Part shown: in pieces, positions 14,918 through 64,000 of the stretch
How positions within the stretch are numbered: position 1 is the first letter of the stretch
Layout: each line of letters begins with the position of its first letter
Assembly (NCBI RefSeq): GCF_023055435.1
Contig: NW_025963813.1
Coordinates: forward strand, 35,216,001 to 35,280,000
Length of the DNA stretch: 64,000 nt
Direction of reading: 5' to 3'
From: Haliotis rufescens
Taxonomy: Eukaryota
Program-made: the position numbers and the translations under genes
The notes under the pieces: model-generated
Databases searched by the model: none
Seen by the model: the letters and a program-made list of their open reading frames with translations, nothing else
Told to the model about the DNA's origin: nothing

Positions 14918-15800
14918 ACAACATACCAAGATTAACAGATCGCTACATCCGACTGCGCCACGTACGTGAAAGGACGAACACAGCCACCCCAACCGCATCT
15001 TAAATACCGGGACTGTGCAGAATCTTCAAACAGACAGTCCGAAACCGTTTAAGAGCAGCTGGTCTAAAAGCAAGACGTCTTGTTCGACGCATCATATTGA
15101 GTCGACCACATCGTCAACAACGACTGCATAGGTGTCCTCAACACAGGGTATGACCTCAACTGCGATGGAGAGATGTCTGGTTCAGCGACTAATCAAGATT
15201 TCTCCTCAGCCGAGGGAATGGAAGAACACAGGTCTACAGACGTCGGGGAGAAAGTTACGCTGGAAACTGCATACAGGAAGCGGACAGGTAGGGTAGGGGT
15301 AGTATTATGATGTGGACGGCTATCGCTTATCATGGCAGGACAGGTTTGGTCCATATCAAGTGCAATTTTACGGCTCAACGATACATCAACGAAATTCTCC
15401 TGCAACACGTCCTCCCAATTGCAACGGTGTATTCCAGCAGGACAACCCTCGACCGCATGCAGCAGGGATCACAAGAGCCTGTCTACACAACAGCAACGTT
15501 GTCCTCCCCTGGTCCTCCAGATCCCCGAATTTGAACCTGATAGAGCACCTGTGGGATGAATTGGAAAGACGGCTACGCCGATGTCAACCACAGCCCCAGA
15601 CATTGCACCAGTTTGCCTTTACATTGCAGGACGAGTGGGCTACTATTCCCCAGGTTGTAATTAGCAGACTCGTCTCTTCCATGGGAGATGTCAGGCCGCT
15701 ATCGATTCCAACGGGGTACGTACGCGTAATTGATGGTAGCTGACCTTCACCTTGGACTTTTCCTATGTACCGATAACTGAGTTGACTTCTGTCACCAAAT
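14918..15800 (+). mobile_element. Tc1-like transposase remnant
   Basis: DRYIRLRH, WFSD, GSIMMW, FQQDNPRPH, WSSRSPNLNLIEHLWDELERRLR (DD34E-type) with stops and frameshifts. Confidence 0.85.
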
Positions 15801-51189: not shown

Positions 51190-52400
51190 AATATACTGAA
51201 CCTCAAATAAAACGTCACCCCAAGTAACATTGCATGAACAGTTGTCATTTAAATATCTAGGTACGTTTTGTCAAAGTTTCTAAAAATTAACATTACCTTG
51301 TCCGGAAAAATTAAGTTTGATGATAAAAAACCCAAAGCAGATGACAATAAAACCGCATCACGGCAACGGCCATGAAATTGAAATGCACATGCGTTCCCCA
51401 ATTCATGCCCTATCGGATCCACCCAGATCAGATAACATACATTTGTTATTGAATTGCTACCACATGCCAAGATTGACAAGAAATCAGCGACACCAAGCGC
51501 TTGGACGATTGCAGGCTGAACAAACCGCCCGGCAAGTAGCCAATGCATTTCACGTCCACGTAAGGACCATATACAGGCTCCAGCAACAGTTCCAGACCAC
51601 CAACACTACAGATGACCGACCACGTAGTGGAAGACCAAGGGTCACCACCCGACGTCAGGATCGTCAGATCATGCGACAGCATCTTCAAGATCGCTTTGTT
51701 ACTGGTGCGAAAACTGCTCGACAGACCACGGGAACACCAGCGACACATTAGTGCGGACACCGTGCGTCGATACCTCCACTGTCACAGGCCACACCGAGGA
51801 CCCATTCTGTCAAAACGTCATCGCCGGGACCGTCTTCAGTGGGCAACACAGCACCAGCATTCGCGCCATCAGCAGTGGAGAAGAGACCTCTTCTCAGACG
51901 AGAGCCGTTACTGTATCTCAACAGCAGATGGCATAGAGAGTCTGGAGTGGGGAACGTTATTCGGTACATTGATCAAGTCTTGAGACCACACGCCATACCT
52001 CATTTGGCACGTCGCCGCAACCACACGAAATTCAGCATGATGACGCCCGTGCCCGCACTGCGAGAGCAACAAGAGACTACCCCTTGCAGAATGCCATCAG
52101 AACCATGCAGTGAACTGCCCTCCGTCCCGATTTAAATCCCACTGAGCACCTGTGGGACGAGATTCAAATACGGCTGAATGACGTCCGACCTAGGCGAACA
52201 CAACAGCTGAACTGCGTCAGGCGTTCCCCAGAGTGTGGGCTCAAGTGCCTATGACCTTCATCAACCGCCTCATCCATTCCATGTATCGACGTTGCACGGC
52301 AGTCATCAATCCACATGGCGGACACACGAGATACTGACTTGTAAGGGTTCCTTTTAGTGGCGTTATGCTTATTATCTGTCACCTGTATGTTTCCTGTAAC
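51190..52400 (+). mobile_element. Tc1-like DNA transposon, near full-length but frameshifted
   Basis: From 51464 MPRLTRNQRHQALGRLQA...RPRSGRPRVTTRRQDR (HTH region), LFSDESR, QHDDARAH, PDLNPTEHLWDEI, GGHTRY*. Confidence 0.88.
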
Positions 52401-58589: not shown

Positions 58590-58870
58590 TATCAACTTCC
58601 GATAACGTCAATCTCAAGTGGGGGAAGTAACATCTTATTTCAAACATACATGTTACATCTTGTCAGTGATGAAAACGCATTTCATCACACATTCAAAGTG
58701 CACAGTGTCCAGGCTTGATCCAATACATTACTGAAATGGCGATCGATCCTCTTGTCCAGAACACTATGTCGGCACGTTATGTCTGGGAATTGTCAATTGC
58801 GATCTTGACTTCCTTTTTTCACCACCTTTTTTATCCCAGTGAAAGGAATACGACACATTTACATCTGACA

Positions 58871-61800
58871 TCATCTAAAATAAAGTTTTTTGGTCAACTT
58901 GGAACTAACATCGGGGAATTGTCCTTGCCATTCCTCATAGCGGTTGACCACTTTCCTACCTTTGACTCGTCTCGTCACTACCGTCATGATATCTGCTAGA
59001 TGATCGCTGTAAACATTCATTGAACAATTGATTAAATCATGGACTGCAGAAGGAACACCTGAATACCTGTAACAAGATGTTCTGATATCTAGATGTCACA
59101 CTGAAACTAGTCCTTCGATCGTTGCAAAACATTTTCATCTAGCATTTCGCGATATGACTGCAATATTGCCGATGCGATGTAAAATTTTAACTCTCTTAAC
59201 TCATCTAGCCTTTTTATCAAAGTGACATGATATGAAGTCTATATTCAGTATGTTTATACATAAAGCTTCAAATGATGGTACGGACTGTGAACAACCAGAT
59301 AAGTGACAAGTAACTAGTAGTTTATAAGACCAATAATACACATAGGGTTATTGTAAAAAAAAGTGGACACAGTGGATATCTATAATCGGAATTTCGAATC
59401 GGCATATGTAGTGGCAAATATATGATGCTACTCAATGTTTTCTAACAAATATTAGATCATTTTACCTGCCCGACAGCTCAGTCATTACTTTTATAAATTC
59501 GTCAGTGAAAACATCTCCTGTCTCATTGTTTCGAATTGAACTTTCACCAGGTTGGGCAGCATAGCAGAAAAAGAAGTCTTCAATATCCTCAATATCGCCA
59601 CAAGACTCATTACAGCTGACAGAAAAATCTGGAAAATGAATAAAATCAGGCAAAGATAACGCATTAGATTCAGTCACATTCAATCAGTAACATTTCACCA
59701 ACAAGAGATATTTTATTTGCGTTTGGAAGGAATGTGTTTACCTACGATTCAGGTACATGAAGGAAGATACTCTCTCTAGGTTATCTATATGTACATTTAG
59801 ATATACAGAAGGAACTGCGGTACAACTACTACTGATGCTCTAATAATGAGTTGTGAATTACTGAGGAAGATGACCCGTGAAGGGTAGAATAGGTCTTCAG
59901 CAACCCATGCTTGCCGTAAAAGGTGACTATGCTTGTCGTAAAAGGCGACTAACAGGATCGTGTGGTCAGGCTCGCTGACTTGGTTGATGCATGTCATCGA
60001 TCCCAATTGCGCGGATCGATGTTCATGATATTAAGCACTGGATTGTCTGTCCAGACTCGATTATTTACAATCCGCCGTCATATAGCTGGAATATTGCTGA
60101 GTGCGGCGTTAAACAACAAACCATCCAACCAACGAACAACTGAGGAAGATAGACAGACTAAAATCTCGGTTGTTTAAATCAGAATTGGTTATTGTGATTC
60201 CAGACCTCTGATTCACAAATCATAATTGAGCATTTGCAAATTTCATGATAGATTCACGGTTTTATTTTTAACTCAAAACAGATATAATTACACGTGTGTG
60301 CAGAACGTGGACACTAAATACAAAACATGAGGTTGTAGAATATATTCAAATTCAGTTAAACTTTACCACTCATACATTGTGGGTGTGAGATTTTATGGAT
60401 AGTTCATACTTACCATACTTCCTACATGCGTCAATGAAAAACAGCTTTGGTTTCCCTTTCAGATTGGGACACTTGTCAGGTCTAAATTGACGTGCAATGT
60501 CTTTGATACAAATCCTTTGGAGGTCTTTACTATATATTACCCCTTCTCTTCCATGTGAAGAAATAAAGACCACAAAACAGTCGGTGGCATTGTCGTCCAT
60601 GTATTTGCCTGCATCTTCAAGTATCTTCTCTATTTCCTTCTTTGTGTTATCAGTGTATGACCAAACTTTAAACTTCAAGTCCTCAAATAATGTTTTCAGT
60701 TTCGCTGGAATTTAAAACATGGTATTATAAACATCATGTGAAAATAATCCATATAACATTAAACTTATATTCCAATATCTACTATCCTTAGTTGTTACTG
60801 AAAAACCTTGTCAATCATGACAAATAATCTTATGGTTAACAGCAATACATCAATGCTATCACACCTACCAAATCTATCACATCTATCACACCTTTTCAAT
60901 GGAAATGTCCAGCAGAGAGGCAACAGTGAGATGTGTGTATGGGAAAGCCGAGTAATAACACATGACAAGGTACACAGTGATTAACACAAAGTCTATATGG
61001 GACATCAAACATGAGGTCATTTTCTAATCAAAGACTGCAAAGATTAAACAAATGTTCCGAACGTTTATACCCATATATACCCTATCTAATTATTGGTATA
61101 ACAGTCATATAACCACAAACCATTTGCACCAGCTGCTGCATGTCTGTTGAAGCCTGTCTTGTCGAAATGTACAATGTTGAGGATGACACAAAGTCCTGAA
61201 ACGTGTACACAGTGAGATGCTGCAAGTCTATATCTGATTGGGTTAATTGTCACGTAAAATTTTAGAACAACCACCTCAAGTAAGACCGGACTGTGGTCTA
61301 GGAAGGAAGGTTTCAAAGGTATTCTAAAGCATTTCAAATTCAACCAAAATGTATATCTGTATACGTCCTTATGCATGTATTCAAATGTACAAGAGCACCA
61401 TTTGATTTGGGCGGAGGTCCCGCGAGACAAAGTAATCTGTTCCTGAAAATACTTAAACAATAATTTATCCTCGGGTTTAACAATAATATCGTTTTGTTTA
61501 ATAGGCATTTTCTATTGTGTCTGCTTAACAATATTGCTCACTGGACATACTTGATTTTCTGAAGAATACCCCAAACACCCACAAATCGTGTGCCACCCGT
61601 GGGTCAGGATATGCGCACCTTTTTGCCAACGCCTGGTACCATCACAATTTGATGTTGATTTAAAAAAATATGCTCATGATGTAGTTGGAATAGTGCCATA
61701 TGTTTTTAGAAGAGGCTTTTTTTATTATGGAAATAGCTTTATCACTATGATTGTACTTTCCAGAGGAATATACTGAAAACATTGACTGAAAAAATATCAG

Positions 61801-62814
61801 GTTTCAAATACAAATGCCAGCATGCCCTCCTACTTAATACTTATTATTAAAAAGTCTAACCCAGGGAATATATGATTCATTTACTTTTCATAAATCAATT
61901 ACATCTCAGTACAAGTACCTCTTGGTTCAGACATCATTTCGTAGCAACGATCATCTGGAAAGAAAAGAGCTAGCTATGGATAAAAATGTTTGATCTTGCT
62001 CACGCATCATCATATGACATTTTTTAAGAATATCCCTAAGGCCAGTTAGGAATCAAGTATCTATATTTCCTTTACTTGGAAAAAAATGCTGCATTTGTCT
62101 TGGCAAAGCTACGACATTGAAAAGGAGCAATGTAGTTTTACCTGAATGCTTTATTGTCAGAGCCGACATTTCTGCTGCCAAAGGACTGCGTCTCTGCCAT
62201 GTGATGATATCTTTCACTTTCTGTTTCATTCTCAGAGTGACAGGTTTTATCCAATCAAGGGCATCTTGAGATTTAAGACCATCTAAGGGCTTTAGTCTTT
62301 TGTCTGTACGTAGAGATCTCACGTAATCTTTATTTTCATGTATACGTATTTGTGCAATAGCTTCGTGTCGGGTAAATTCGGCAACTCTATCATTCGACAT
62401 GTTGCATGTGTGGAGAAAGAGCACCAACCTGCATTTTGAAGCGATTACACCAGGTCTTTGTACCAGATCTGCACCAAAACATGGATGTGTGAAAAGTCTC
62501 ACATCAACAGCAGTACCATCAGTTAAACAAAGTTGATTCATTTCTTCAAAAATTTCCTCAGCTAGATCCTCATCAGCCGTTTCATATACAAGTGCAGCAT
62601 CAAAACTCTTACCAACTCTGTCTGTCCGTGAAGTCGTAGTTGTTACCTGTGTCGCCATGTTGGGAGCAATATCTGTGGTAGCCGTATCCCTATTTGCAAC
62701 GATTTGTGTAGATGTGGCCTCAGGGGATGTGTTTGATGCAGCAAGTGACTCAAACGGCTCAGAATCTTCAATAAGGTCACAGATATTGTCGGCATCAAAA
62801 CCTCCTCCTGCCAT
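58871..62814 (-). CDS. Caspase-family (C14A-like) protein with an N-terminal TIR-like domain (about 457 aa, 6 coding exons)
   Basis: Exons 62142-62814 (acceptor at 62824, so further 5' exons are possible), 61919-61954, 61121-61195, 60414-60704, 59466-59628, 58871-59006; all GT-AG and in phase (1374 nt). Caspase hallmarks: YEMMSEPRGLCVILN, FVVFISSHG, CPNLKGKPKLFFIDACR, DFFFCYAAQPGESSIRN, HLADIMTVV, LTKKLYFR*. Caspase call is strong; TIR call is by motif pattern only. Confidence 0.85.
59872..60138 (+). mobile_element. SINE-like family R1, full length, in caspase gene intron
   Basis: TSD ACTGAGGAAGAT at 59860-59871 and 60139-60150. Confidence 0.88.
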
Positions 62815-64000
62815 GCTTACTGCTCTGTAATGACAGTAAACCGGTTCGGTTACAAGTAGTGGAAATCACCCCTATCAAATCACTCTCTTGCCACCATCCC
62901 AATCCGACCCCAGTCCACCTCACCCCACCTTACCCCACCCCCATTCCCCACCCACCACCTTTCCTCATGACCGCACATTCCTTCTAGACTCAACAGTTTA
63001 CTTTTCATATATGTCGCTATCTTCCCCTGGTCGTGAAGTAACTATGTTTTTACTTCATTTGTATTAATGTTAATGCGAGCCACAAGAACATTTAAAGATA
63101 AATGTGATGGTGATGACGCGGTCTAAAGTCTATGAAATAAAAGTTATCTTACAACTATTCACATGAGAAATCATGAGAATCTACTTCTGGAATCAAAAGA
63201 TTCAAGCCATTTCTCTGACGTAAATAATGCTATGATTGACATATATTTTCTCTGTAGTTGACCTATAAGTGCGGCAGTTTGACGTGTTTAAAATGCAGGT
63301 TCAGAATGACCAGTGAGTTCCTGGCTCAGTATCAACTGCAAGAACAAAAGCATGACGTCATAATGAGATAGAGCAACAACAGTTCACCACCTACCAATAT
63401 CTTGGGCTGGTTTGCCAAATATTATAACAACATATTGTTGTATAAATTGTTCTAATCAAAATACAAAACAATAAGCACTTTATTAGTTTGGGGGTTGTAA
63501 GTTTGCAATACCATTAACCACAAGACGTGCATTGCTGTGGCCCTTCTGTGCCCTTTGTCGGCGCTTCGACTGTGACGTTTTGGCTGTGTCAGTACAAAAG
63601 ACAAAGGCGTGATACAGACAATATCGGTGGAAACGAAAATACCGATTGACTGCACAGTGCGAATATATATTAGCTAAATGCAGTCCAGGTGTGTATGCAA
63701 GGGAGACAACTGCGAAAGACTTATAGCACAAGATCATATGTGACTTTAATGTTCAGAGTTTTGTGTAATGACCAACCAGTATAATCCTTGATACAGATTG
63801 CACTTGCTCTGCTTCCTCGAACATCTGGTGCAGTTGTGCCATCAGACTAAGCCAGTATGGACTACATAGTCGAAAACGTGTTGTACATATCAAATATACT
63901 TCATTATTACGCCTGGCAACTTCCTTGTTTCGTTTTGATGTTGACATAATGGGGCGTGACGAAACATGTCGCAATATGCCACCGTGGTGTAATTCAGTGA

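Follow-up and report, generated by a model that had tools for sequence, protein, structure and literature searches.

Can a TIR domain that shares one polypeptide with a caspase connect recognition to proteolysis directly? Caspases are usually coupled to danger sensing by death-fold adaptors, and TIR signaling reaches caspases via several intermediates. The question is raised by a minus-strand gene in a 64,000-nucleotide stretch of the abalone Haliotis rufescens genome (RefSeq assembly GCF_023055435.1, contig NW_025963813.1, forward-strand positions 35,216,001 to 35,280,000; the whole of this stretch is called the window, and positions are given within it). An earlier interpretation made from the letters alone (the sequence-only reading) had proposed that a TIR-like domain is spliced here directly to a complete caspase. 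The reading favored by the analysis presented here, with a probability of roughly 0.6, is that this is an expressed gene whose product carries a domain of TIR fold in the place normally held by CARD or DED, followed by a complete caspase, and that clustering of the TIR domain would activate the caspase by proximity.

On the minus strand, 58871-62824 comprises six exons separated by five introns, all with GT..AG ends. The exons sum to 1374 nt of coding sequence, corresponding to 457 codons and a TGA stop. The joined 457-residue protein is present in a public protein library as P0001 (100% identity over the query; HMMER, residues 66-224), carries the predicted junction peptides, and is named in RefSeq as caspase-8-like isoform X2 of Haliotis rufescens (XP_046380069.2 and three further accessions). 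With GT..AG introns throughout and an identical library protein, the six-exon, 457-residue frame that had been spliced in silico, including its phase 1 donor and 36-nt exon, was confirmed. The features of the gene are as follows.

62142..62824, minus strand: exon 1, with acceptor ttacag/AGCAG at 62824, ATG at 62814, and coding sequence 62814..62142
after 62142, minus strand: exon 1 donor, CAT TCA G/gtaaaa, phase 1
62620..62814, minus strand: start codon and Ser/Thr-rich N-terminal region, residues 1-65, predicted to be disordered
62149..62607, minus strand: cryptic domain of predicted TIR fold, about residues 70-222, wholly inside exon 1
61919..61954, minus strand: exon 2, a 36-nt micro-exon encoding the linker DDRCYEMMSEPR, phase 1 to phase 1
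61121..61195, minus strand: exon 3, 75 nt, encoding GLCVILN, the first strand of the caspase domain, and the putative first S1-pocket Arg
60414..60704, minus strand: exon 4, encoding the core of the caspase large subunit (Peptidase_C14 match on this exon alone, E = 1.1e-23)
60553-60555, minus strand: codon of catalytic His312 (SHG), in exon 4
60424-60426, minus strand: codon of catalytic Cys355 (DACRK), in exon 4
59466..59628, minus strand: exon 5, encoding the short inter-subunit linker (CGDIEDIED) and the beginning of the small subunit, in which the second S1 Arg (SIRNN) lies
58871..59006, minus strand: exon 6, encoding the end of the small subunit, with TGA at 58871-58873

Exon 5 by itself also matched Peptidase_C14 (E = 8.5e-5). 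Two further isoforms are annotated in RefSeq. Isoform X1 (470 residues) starts 13 residues earlier, in an upstream exon that lies outside the window, and isoform X3 (P0008; 445 residues) skips exon 3 in frame. Retention of intron 1 would extend the open frame by 29 codons before a stop, giving a 253-residue TIR-only product (62053-62814).

The identity of the N-terminal domain was examined at the level of predicted structure. An alignment of 11 domain copies from the H. rufescens genome, with a mean column identity of 47%, is referred to here as the paralogue alignment. Residues 66-224 modeled by AlphaFold2 with the 11 paralogues (predicted local distance difference test score [pLDDT], 82.3; predicted template modeling score, 0.79) formed beta-alpha units in the order found in TIR domains, ending in a long last helix. 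The top Foldseek matches to this model were all TIR domains, including the MAL filament (5uzb; E = 1.3e-5, TM scores of 0.66/0.72), TLR10, MyD88, Hydra TRR-2, TRIF, and TRAM. Alignment with VIA-align gave Z scores of 15.0 for the SPARTA TIR (root mean square deviation [rmsd] of 2.7 A over 131 residues), 14.8 for the TIRs of both MyD88 and TRIF, and 13.1 for that of TRAM, with the best matches (SPARTA, MyD88, and TRIF) falling within 2.7-3.0 A rmsd over 131-133 residues. On these models, the N-terminal domain of P0001 is a TIR fold, as had been proposed for residues 71-207 from the pattern of the translated sequence.

When the profile of the paralogue alignment was compared with the whole PDB (E up to 10), four TIR chains were matched, all of them TRAM or TRIF and all at marginal E values, in alignments spanning nearly the full domain. 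Neighbors in the ESM Atlas pointed in this direction as well, with TIRAP and TICAM2 clusters at 0.83-0.84 and, with a bacterial TIR cluster included, scores of 0.83-0.85, which are under the level at which the tool itself places trust. Assignment of the domain to a "TICAM-like" TIR subtype is accordingly presented as a lead, not a finding. Several conserved segments recall TIR motifs. A box-1-like F-D-A-A-L-V-Y-E occupies residues 71-78, with its Asp invariant in the 11 paralogues and a D-[AV]-[AV]-[LI] segment kept across all of them. A putative BB-loop, H-P-C-F-G followed by R-P-G, lies after the second strand and, by its position in the domain, may correspond to box 2; the nearly invariant Trp188 (W188) ahead of the last helix may likewise correspond to box 3. 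The domain also contains a TxN...D motif, and Glu151 is invariant in 11 of 11 paralogue domains.

The C-terminal half of P0001 (residues 236-455) matched Peptidase_C14 over the complete profile (positions 1-233 of 233; E = 2.2e-41, 142.5 bits against a cut-off of 21.4), which bears out the complete caspase proposed earlier. Among solved structures, its closest relatives are caspase-3 (E = 7.8e-29) and caspase-7 rather than caspase-8, despite the RefSeq name, and no Pfam match to DED (PF01335) or CARD was found in P0001; true caspase-8 proteins in the same search carry PF01335. His312 (S-S-H-G) and Cys355 align to the caspase-3 catalytic dyad, and the second S1 Arg (S-I-R-N-N) aligns to S-W-R-N of caspase-3. 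The active-site pentapeptide is D-A-C-R-K in place of the canonical Q-A-C-x-G, and an R-H-A-A-A-G segment is divergent where other caspases show R-x-G-T/S-x-x-D. The same Gln-to-Asp change is found in the closest relatives of the protein, namely, P0018 from H. cracherodii (IDACRK), P0020 from H. asinina (IDACRT), and P0019 from H. rubra (VDSCRR), so that D-x-C-R is kept in four proteins of four species. Because the motif is conserved across species, it more likely represents a re-specified working site than decay; judged from the alignment, an Asp at the S1-pocket Gln position more likely signifies an altered substrate preference than a dead enzyme.

Transcription was assessed with RNA contigs mapped on 58600-63000, drawn from four runs, four studies, and two organism labels; joints with CT..AC ends were read as GT..AG on the strand of the gene. 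The joint between exons 2 and 3 (61194/61918, cut +1) and that between exons 3 and 4 (60704/61121) were each found in 4 of 4 runs, and the joint between exons 5 and 6 (59006/59466) was found in at least 2 of the 4; the libraries therefore contain spliced RNA of this gene. The gene is expressed and is spliced at these three junctions. Joints between exons 1 and 2 and between exons 4 and 5 were absent among the joints listed. At the predicted exon 1 donor, contigs ended exactly at 62142 in 4 of 4 runs. Beyond that point, one contig (X5 record 23) carried exactly 36 extra letters that do not adjoin on the genome, equal to the length of exon 2, and another (X11 record 16) carried 51 such unplaced letters. 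The bin holding exon 2 (61834-61980) was covered at exon-level depth. Of the two junctions singled out in the sequence-only reading for confirmation in RNA, 61919>61195 was thus recovered in 4 of 4 runs, and 62142>61954 is indicated indirectly, by the contig breaks and the 36 extra letters; the joining of the large exon to the caspase exons is upheld by the two internal joints and the RefSeq model, with its first junction resting on indirect signs. Unspliced contigs across introns 1 and 2 were also present, at about one-third of exon depth, and may derive from pre-mRNA or DNA.

The main product would thus have three parts within its 457 residues: a disordered, Ser/Thr-rich N terminus (pLDDT of about 30 for residues 1-65 in the full-length model), a divergent TIR domain, and a complete caspase. 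CARD-bearing caspase-9 and DED-bearing caspase-8 are activated by induced proximity. By analogy, the TIR domain would serve as a homotypic docking module, and its clustering would gather several copies of the zymogen, whose caspase domains would then be fired by proximity. The clustering site could be an activated Toll-like receptor or adaptor or, alternatively, STAND-NTPase/ankyrin proteins bearing the same N-terminal TIR subtype. Recruitment through the TIR followed by induced-proximity activation is the most likely mode of action given this arrangement, and from it we infer a one-step link from recognition to proteolysis, as the sequence-only reading had suggested.

Self-association of the TIR domain was modeled with two copies, giving a score of 0.33 compared to 0.00 for the best of three controls. 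Among solved structures, 21 of 30 one-chain pairs and 0 of 23 single chains attained the mark used for such scores; among eukaryotic cases it was attained by 17 of 29, but by just 1 of 7 lacking an older solved relative. The runs agreed in at least 90% of contacts, with a partner pLDDT of at least 83, and the predicted symmetric interface includes His110-Pro111-Cys112 at the start of the BB-loop. This model is weak support for TIR self-association. The full-length AlphaFold2 model (8-sequence alignment; mean pLDDT, 56.6) was confident in the caspase half only and held no usable information on the relative placement of TIR and caspase.

Several observations weigh against proximity activation of a working caspase by a TIR domain. 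The two-copy score just reached its mark and may reflect memory of solved TIR dimers. At the sequence level, the TIR assignment is faint: the Pfam check that had been proposed for the domain failed to detect it, with no TIR or TIR_2 match on exon 1 at E values up to 10, no Pfam TIR-family match on P0001-P0007 at E values up to 0.1, and no TIR match in a single-sequence PDB search with the TIR region. The profile matches were marginal (E = 0.016, 0.056, and 0.087 for TRAM and 1.1 for TRIF). In the caspase half, the first S1 Arg (N-R-H) lies one residue off the caspase-3 Arg in the HMMER alignment (a fit is obtained by moving both gaps into the loop before it), and DACRK together with the divergent R-H-A-A-A-G segment could lower or abolish Asp-directed activity. 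Isoform X3 is likely inactive: skipping of exon 3 takes away the first S1 arginine along with the first strand of the caspase domain and would probably leave the product unable to fold as an active caspase. Finally, support for the junction between exons 1 and 2 is indirect, and that joint is missing from those listed.

Some of these same features could instead describe a regulator. The protein cFLIP, which damps caspase-8, offers a model in which a TIR domain attached to a protease that is weakened or has changed specificity would take up places in TIR assemblies, or pair with other caspases, and so damp signaling, or in which TIR-only forms would act as dominant negatives. The noncanonical DACRK, the divergent Arg179 segment, the missing first caspase strand of isoform X3, the 253-residue frame opened by retention of intron 1, and the depth of unspliced intron 1 contigs are all compatible with such a decoy. 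However, the His/Cys dyad is retained, as are both S1 arginines when the first is aligned with its gaps in the loop ahead of it; the recurrence of D-x-C-R in four species speaks for a functional site maintained by selection, and pre-mRNA or contaminating DNA may account for the unspliced contigs. A decoy role is on balance unlikely.

A still less probable explanation is that the TIR domain is enzymatic or signal linked, in the manner of SARM1 and of plant and bacterial TIRs: it would consume NAD+, or it would make or sense a signal, derived from ADP-ribose, by which the attached caspase is controlled. Such a protein would correspond to bacterial type IV Thoeris in fused form. Structural matches to the NADase TIRs of SPARTA, AbTir, SARM1, and RUN1 (Z scores of 12-15), the invariance of Glu151, and the bacterial precedent for TIR-to-caspase signaling (bioRxiv 10.1101/2024.10.24.620036) are consistent with this explanation. 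Fold likeness alone, however, cannot separate scaffold from enzymatic TIRs; the sequence-level matches are solely to the scaffold TIRs TRAM and TRIF, and the invariant Glu falls on no conserved TRAM residue in the TRAM alignment. Wrong merging of a neighboring TIR gene and caspase gene in annotation or assembly, which would fit the missing joint between exons 1 and 2 and the computational nature of RefSeq models, is very improbable given that contigs break at the predicted donor in 4 of 4 runs (one with exactly 36 extra letters), that the next two joints occur in 4 of 4 runs, that the order of TIR exon and caspase exon, with a phase 1 TIR exon ending at G/gtaaag, is repeated in at least five paralogues, and that the architecture recurs in other abalone species.

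Public sequences contain few examples of this TIR subtype: in a library of 1.84 billion proteins, seven matched at E values up to 0.001, all from Haliotis or Lottia. The subtype predates abalone, because a Lottia member (P0006) exists. A word-indexed homologue search with residues 66-224 returned only P0001 itself. Relatives of the window protein were found in four other abalone species, and the search for the same architecture that had been suggested earlier was productive, recovering TIR-caspases from H. cracherodii, H. discus hannai, H. asinina, and H. rufescens, including an array of paralogues in the last. These fall into two types. Type A consists of the window gene and P0018, the latter detected through its caspase half only in the word-indexed search. 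Type B consists of P0002 and P0012-P0017 (H. cracherodii, H. discus hannai, H. rufescens, and H. asinina), in which QACQ is kept.

In H. rufescens, type B genes form a tandem array on contig C534, with five complete TIR exons spaced at about 43 kb, each followed 2-6 kb downstream by caspase exons, and with additional fragments; the array holds at least five further genes combining a TIR exon with caspase exons. It spans G000:C534:793500-1023300 (L002-L007, L015-L017). It mixes live genes with decaying copies: one TIR exon (935 kb) is interrupted by an in-frame TAA, only a fragment is left of the copy at 971 kb, and stop codons fall in the caspase exons of the lowest copy (794-809 kb). The contig of the window gene also carries, at a distance of 5.4 Mb from it, an isolated type-B-like TIR exon fragment with one TAA and 50-74% identity (G000:C35:40641170-40641648, L008).

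Overall identity between P0018 and P0001 is 66%, rising to 78% in the caspase half. H. cracherodii and H. rufescens are close relatives, and P0018 may be either a paralogue lacking an H. rufescens counterpart or a very fast-evolving gene. The closest relatives without a TIR domain, P0019 (H. rubra) and P0020 (H. asinina), have a hydrophobic, membrane-anchor-like N terminus, and the H. rufescens genome has a hit of its own (G000:C35:16246404-16246721).

The same TIR subtype also stands outside caspases. In the very large proteins P0004 and P0005 it is N terminal to an nSTAND3 NTPase and many ankyrin repeats, an arrangement encoded at G000:C334:34394198-34394635 (L010) and 34486577-34486993 (L009). 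In a third architecture, found in Lottia P0006, H. rubra P0007, and four loci clustered on C68 (G000:C68:1075399-1161596, L011-L014), the N-terminal TIR is followed by a low-complexity, poorly conserved tail of 400-800 residues. A RHIM-like motif considered in the tails of P0006 and P0007, by which they would have resembled TRIF, was rejected after a regular-expression scan and alignment with four H. rufescens paralogues, which revealed no conservation. By their domain order, proteins of the P0004/P0005 type are NLR-like candidate upstream partners of the TIR-caspases, and the sharing of one TIR subtype suggests an apoptosome-like pairing of sensor and TIR-caspase. A broader version of this proposal, in which STAND/ankyrin sensors recruit TIR-caspases for death-fold-free caspase activation on a lineage-specific, TICAM-like TIR that is a protostome relative of TRIF and TRAM, is speculative and, on present evidence, doubtful. 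If it is true, abalone would possess a TIR-based counterpart of the apoptosome or inflammasome, and the TRIF/TRAM TIR, now held to be a chordate invention, would have a protostome relative.

The relationship between the two types of fusion was examined through exon structure and phylogeny. By exact-block mapping, the type B TIR exon likewise ends in phase 1, at G/gtaaag, and is followed by a micro-exon. Intron positions in the caspase domain differ between type B and the window gene. In caspase-domain trees, type A grouped with the TIR-less P0019 and P0020 (support, 100/99). The approximately unbiased (AU) test rejected a clade of types A and B alone (P = 0.0018), the group tested having been named after the first tree was seen, and did not reject a clade of types A and B together with P0019 and P0020 (P = 0.44). 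Because of these two results, two histories are possible: the TIR exon may have been gained twice, or gained once and then replaced in P0019/P0020.

A natural TIR-caspase fusion offers a compact test of whether clustering of TIR domains is enough, by itself, to fire a caspase. The abalone fusion is conserved as a gene family, and STAND NTPases carry its TIR subtype as well. Conservation of the DACRK site prompts the question of whether cleavage preference has changed, and the escape of the domain from standard domain searches means that such searches under-count mollusc TIR proteins. For the immunology of abalone, a disease-troubled aquaculture species, the protein is a concrete candidate effector.

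One noncoding feature lies within the gene itself.

59881..60121, no strand assigned: very high-copy interspersed repeat in intron 4, outside the coding sequence

Summed RNA-contig depth reached about 2e5 on this repeat, whereas the exons had 20-60. Positions 59882 and 60121 are the end points of hundreds of contigs, A-rich tails follow past 60121, and the repeat looks like an element of the short interspersed nuclear element (SINE) type. Elsewhere in the window, open frames at 15312-15740 and 51317-51980 gave weak matches to DDE_3 transposase and Tc3-type helix-turn-helix transposase and are transposon relics. No further immune genes were found among the large open frames of the window.

Comparison with known systems places the abalone protein among several partial precedents. 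TRIF (TICAM-1) reaches caspase-8 indirectly, via RHIM, RIPK1, and FADD. TRAM (TICAM-2) and TRIF supply the sole PDB TIRs matched by the abalone profile and share with it an L-T-E-N-x-x-x-D segment, a Pro-Cys at the start of the BB-loop, and an R-P-L segment; the structural likeness extends to the TIR of the TRIF filament (Z score of 14.8) and to TRAM (13.1). Unlike these adaptors, the abalone protein lacks a myristoylation site, RHIM, TRAF-binding, and pLxIS motifs, and the C-terminal partner of its TIR is a caspase. TICAM adaptors are stated to be chordate specific (PMC9334734). The abalone TIR may be either a true TICAM relative or merely similar.

With the CARD and DED initiator caspases, the abalone protein shares the placement of a homotypic interaction domain N terminal to the caspase, from which induced proximity is expected, and with Apaf-1/NLR logic it shares an adaptor domain held in common with STAND NTPases. 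It differs from the initiator caspases in that its prodomain has a predicted TIR fold, not a death fold, and in that its catalytic domain is nearest caspase-3/7 among solved structures and carries the DACRK motif.

Fusions of other immune domains to caspases are known from amphioxus, in which TNFR-, LRR-, and death-caspase "shortcut" proteins have been described from cDNA-verified models (Zhang et al. 2008, PMC2575513). There too, domain shuffling joins an immune recognition or adaptor domain straight to a caspase; the fused domains and the phylum are different, and QACXG is kept. No TIR-caspase is named in the passages of that paper that were searched. In bacterial type IV Thoeris, a TIR protein acts with a caspase-like protease through a diffusible N7-cADPR signal (bioRxiv 10.1101/2024.10.24.620036). 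The TIR is again paired with a caspase-family protease in immunity; unlike the abalone gene, that system is prokaryotic and consists of two separate proteins linked by a nucleotide, and its likeness to the abalone protein is known at the fold level only.

The closest precedent is annelid. Whether a TIR-caspase had been described before was left open in the sequence-only reading, and the answer is that it had: two TIR-domain caspases are reported from Metaphire vulgaris in the accessible text of Krasovec et al. (2024, Genome Biol Evol, PMC11463336). That text describes unusual caspase prodomains in annelids, a brachiopod, and flatworms and names none for molluscs. The annelid TIRs were found, as far as it states, by standard domain annotation, in contrast to the abalone TIR, which escapes Pfam. 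The annelid and abalone fusions are probably independent in view of the seven library matches to the abalone TIR (E up to 0.001), among which there was no annelid protein. Therefore, the TIR-caspase architecture as such is already known; what is new relative to the open-access literature searched is the molluscan version with a Pfam-invisible, possibly TICAM-like TIR, its occurrence as a multigene family, its link to STAND NTPases, and the conserved DACRK. In both lophotrochozoan systems, each known from sequence alone, the TIR domain occupies the prodomain position of a caspase, and a gastropod case is now added to the annelid one.

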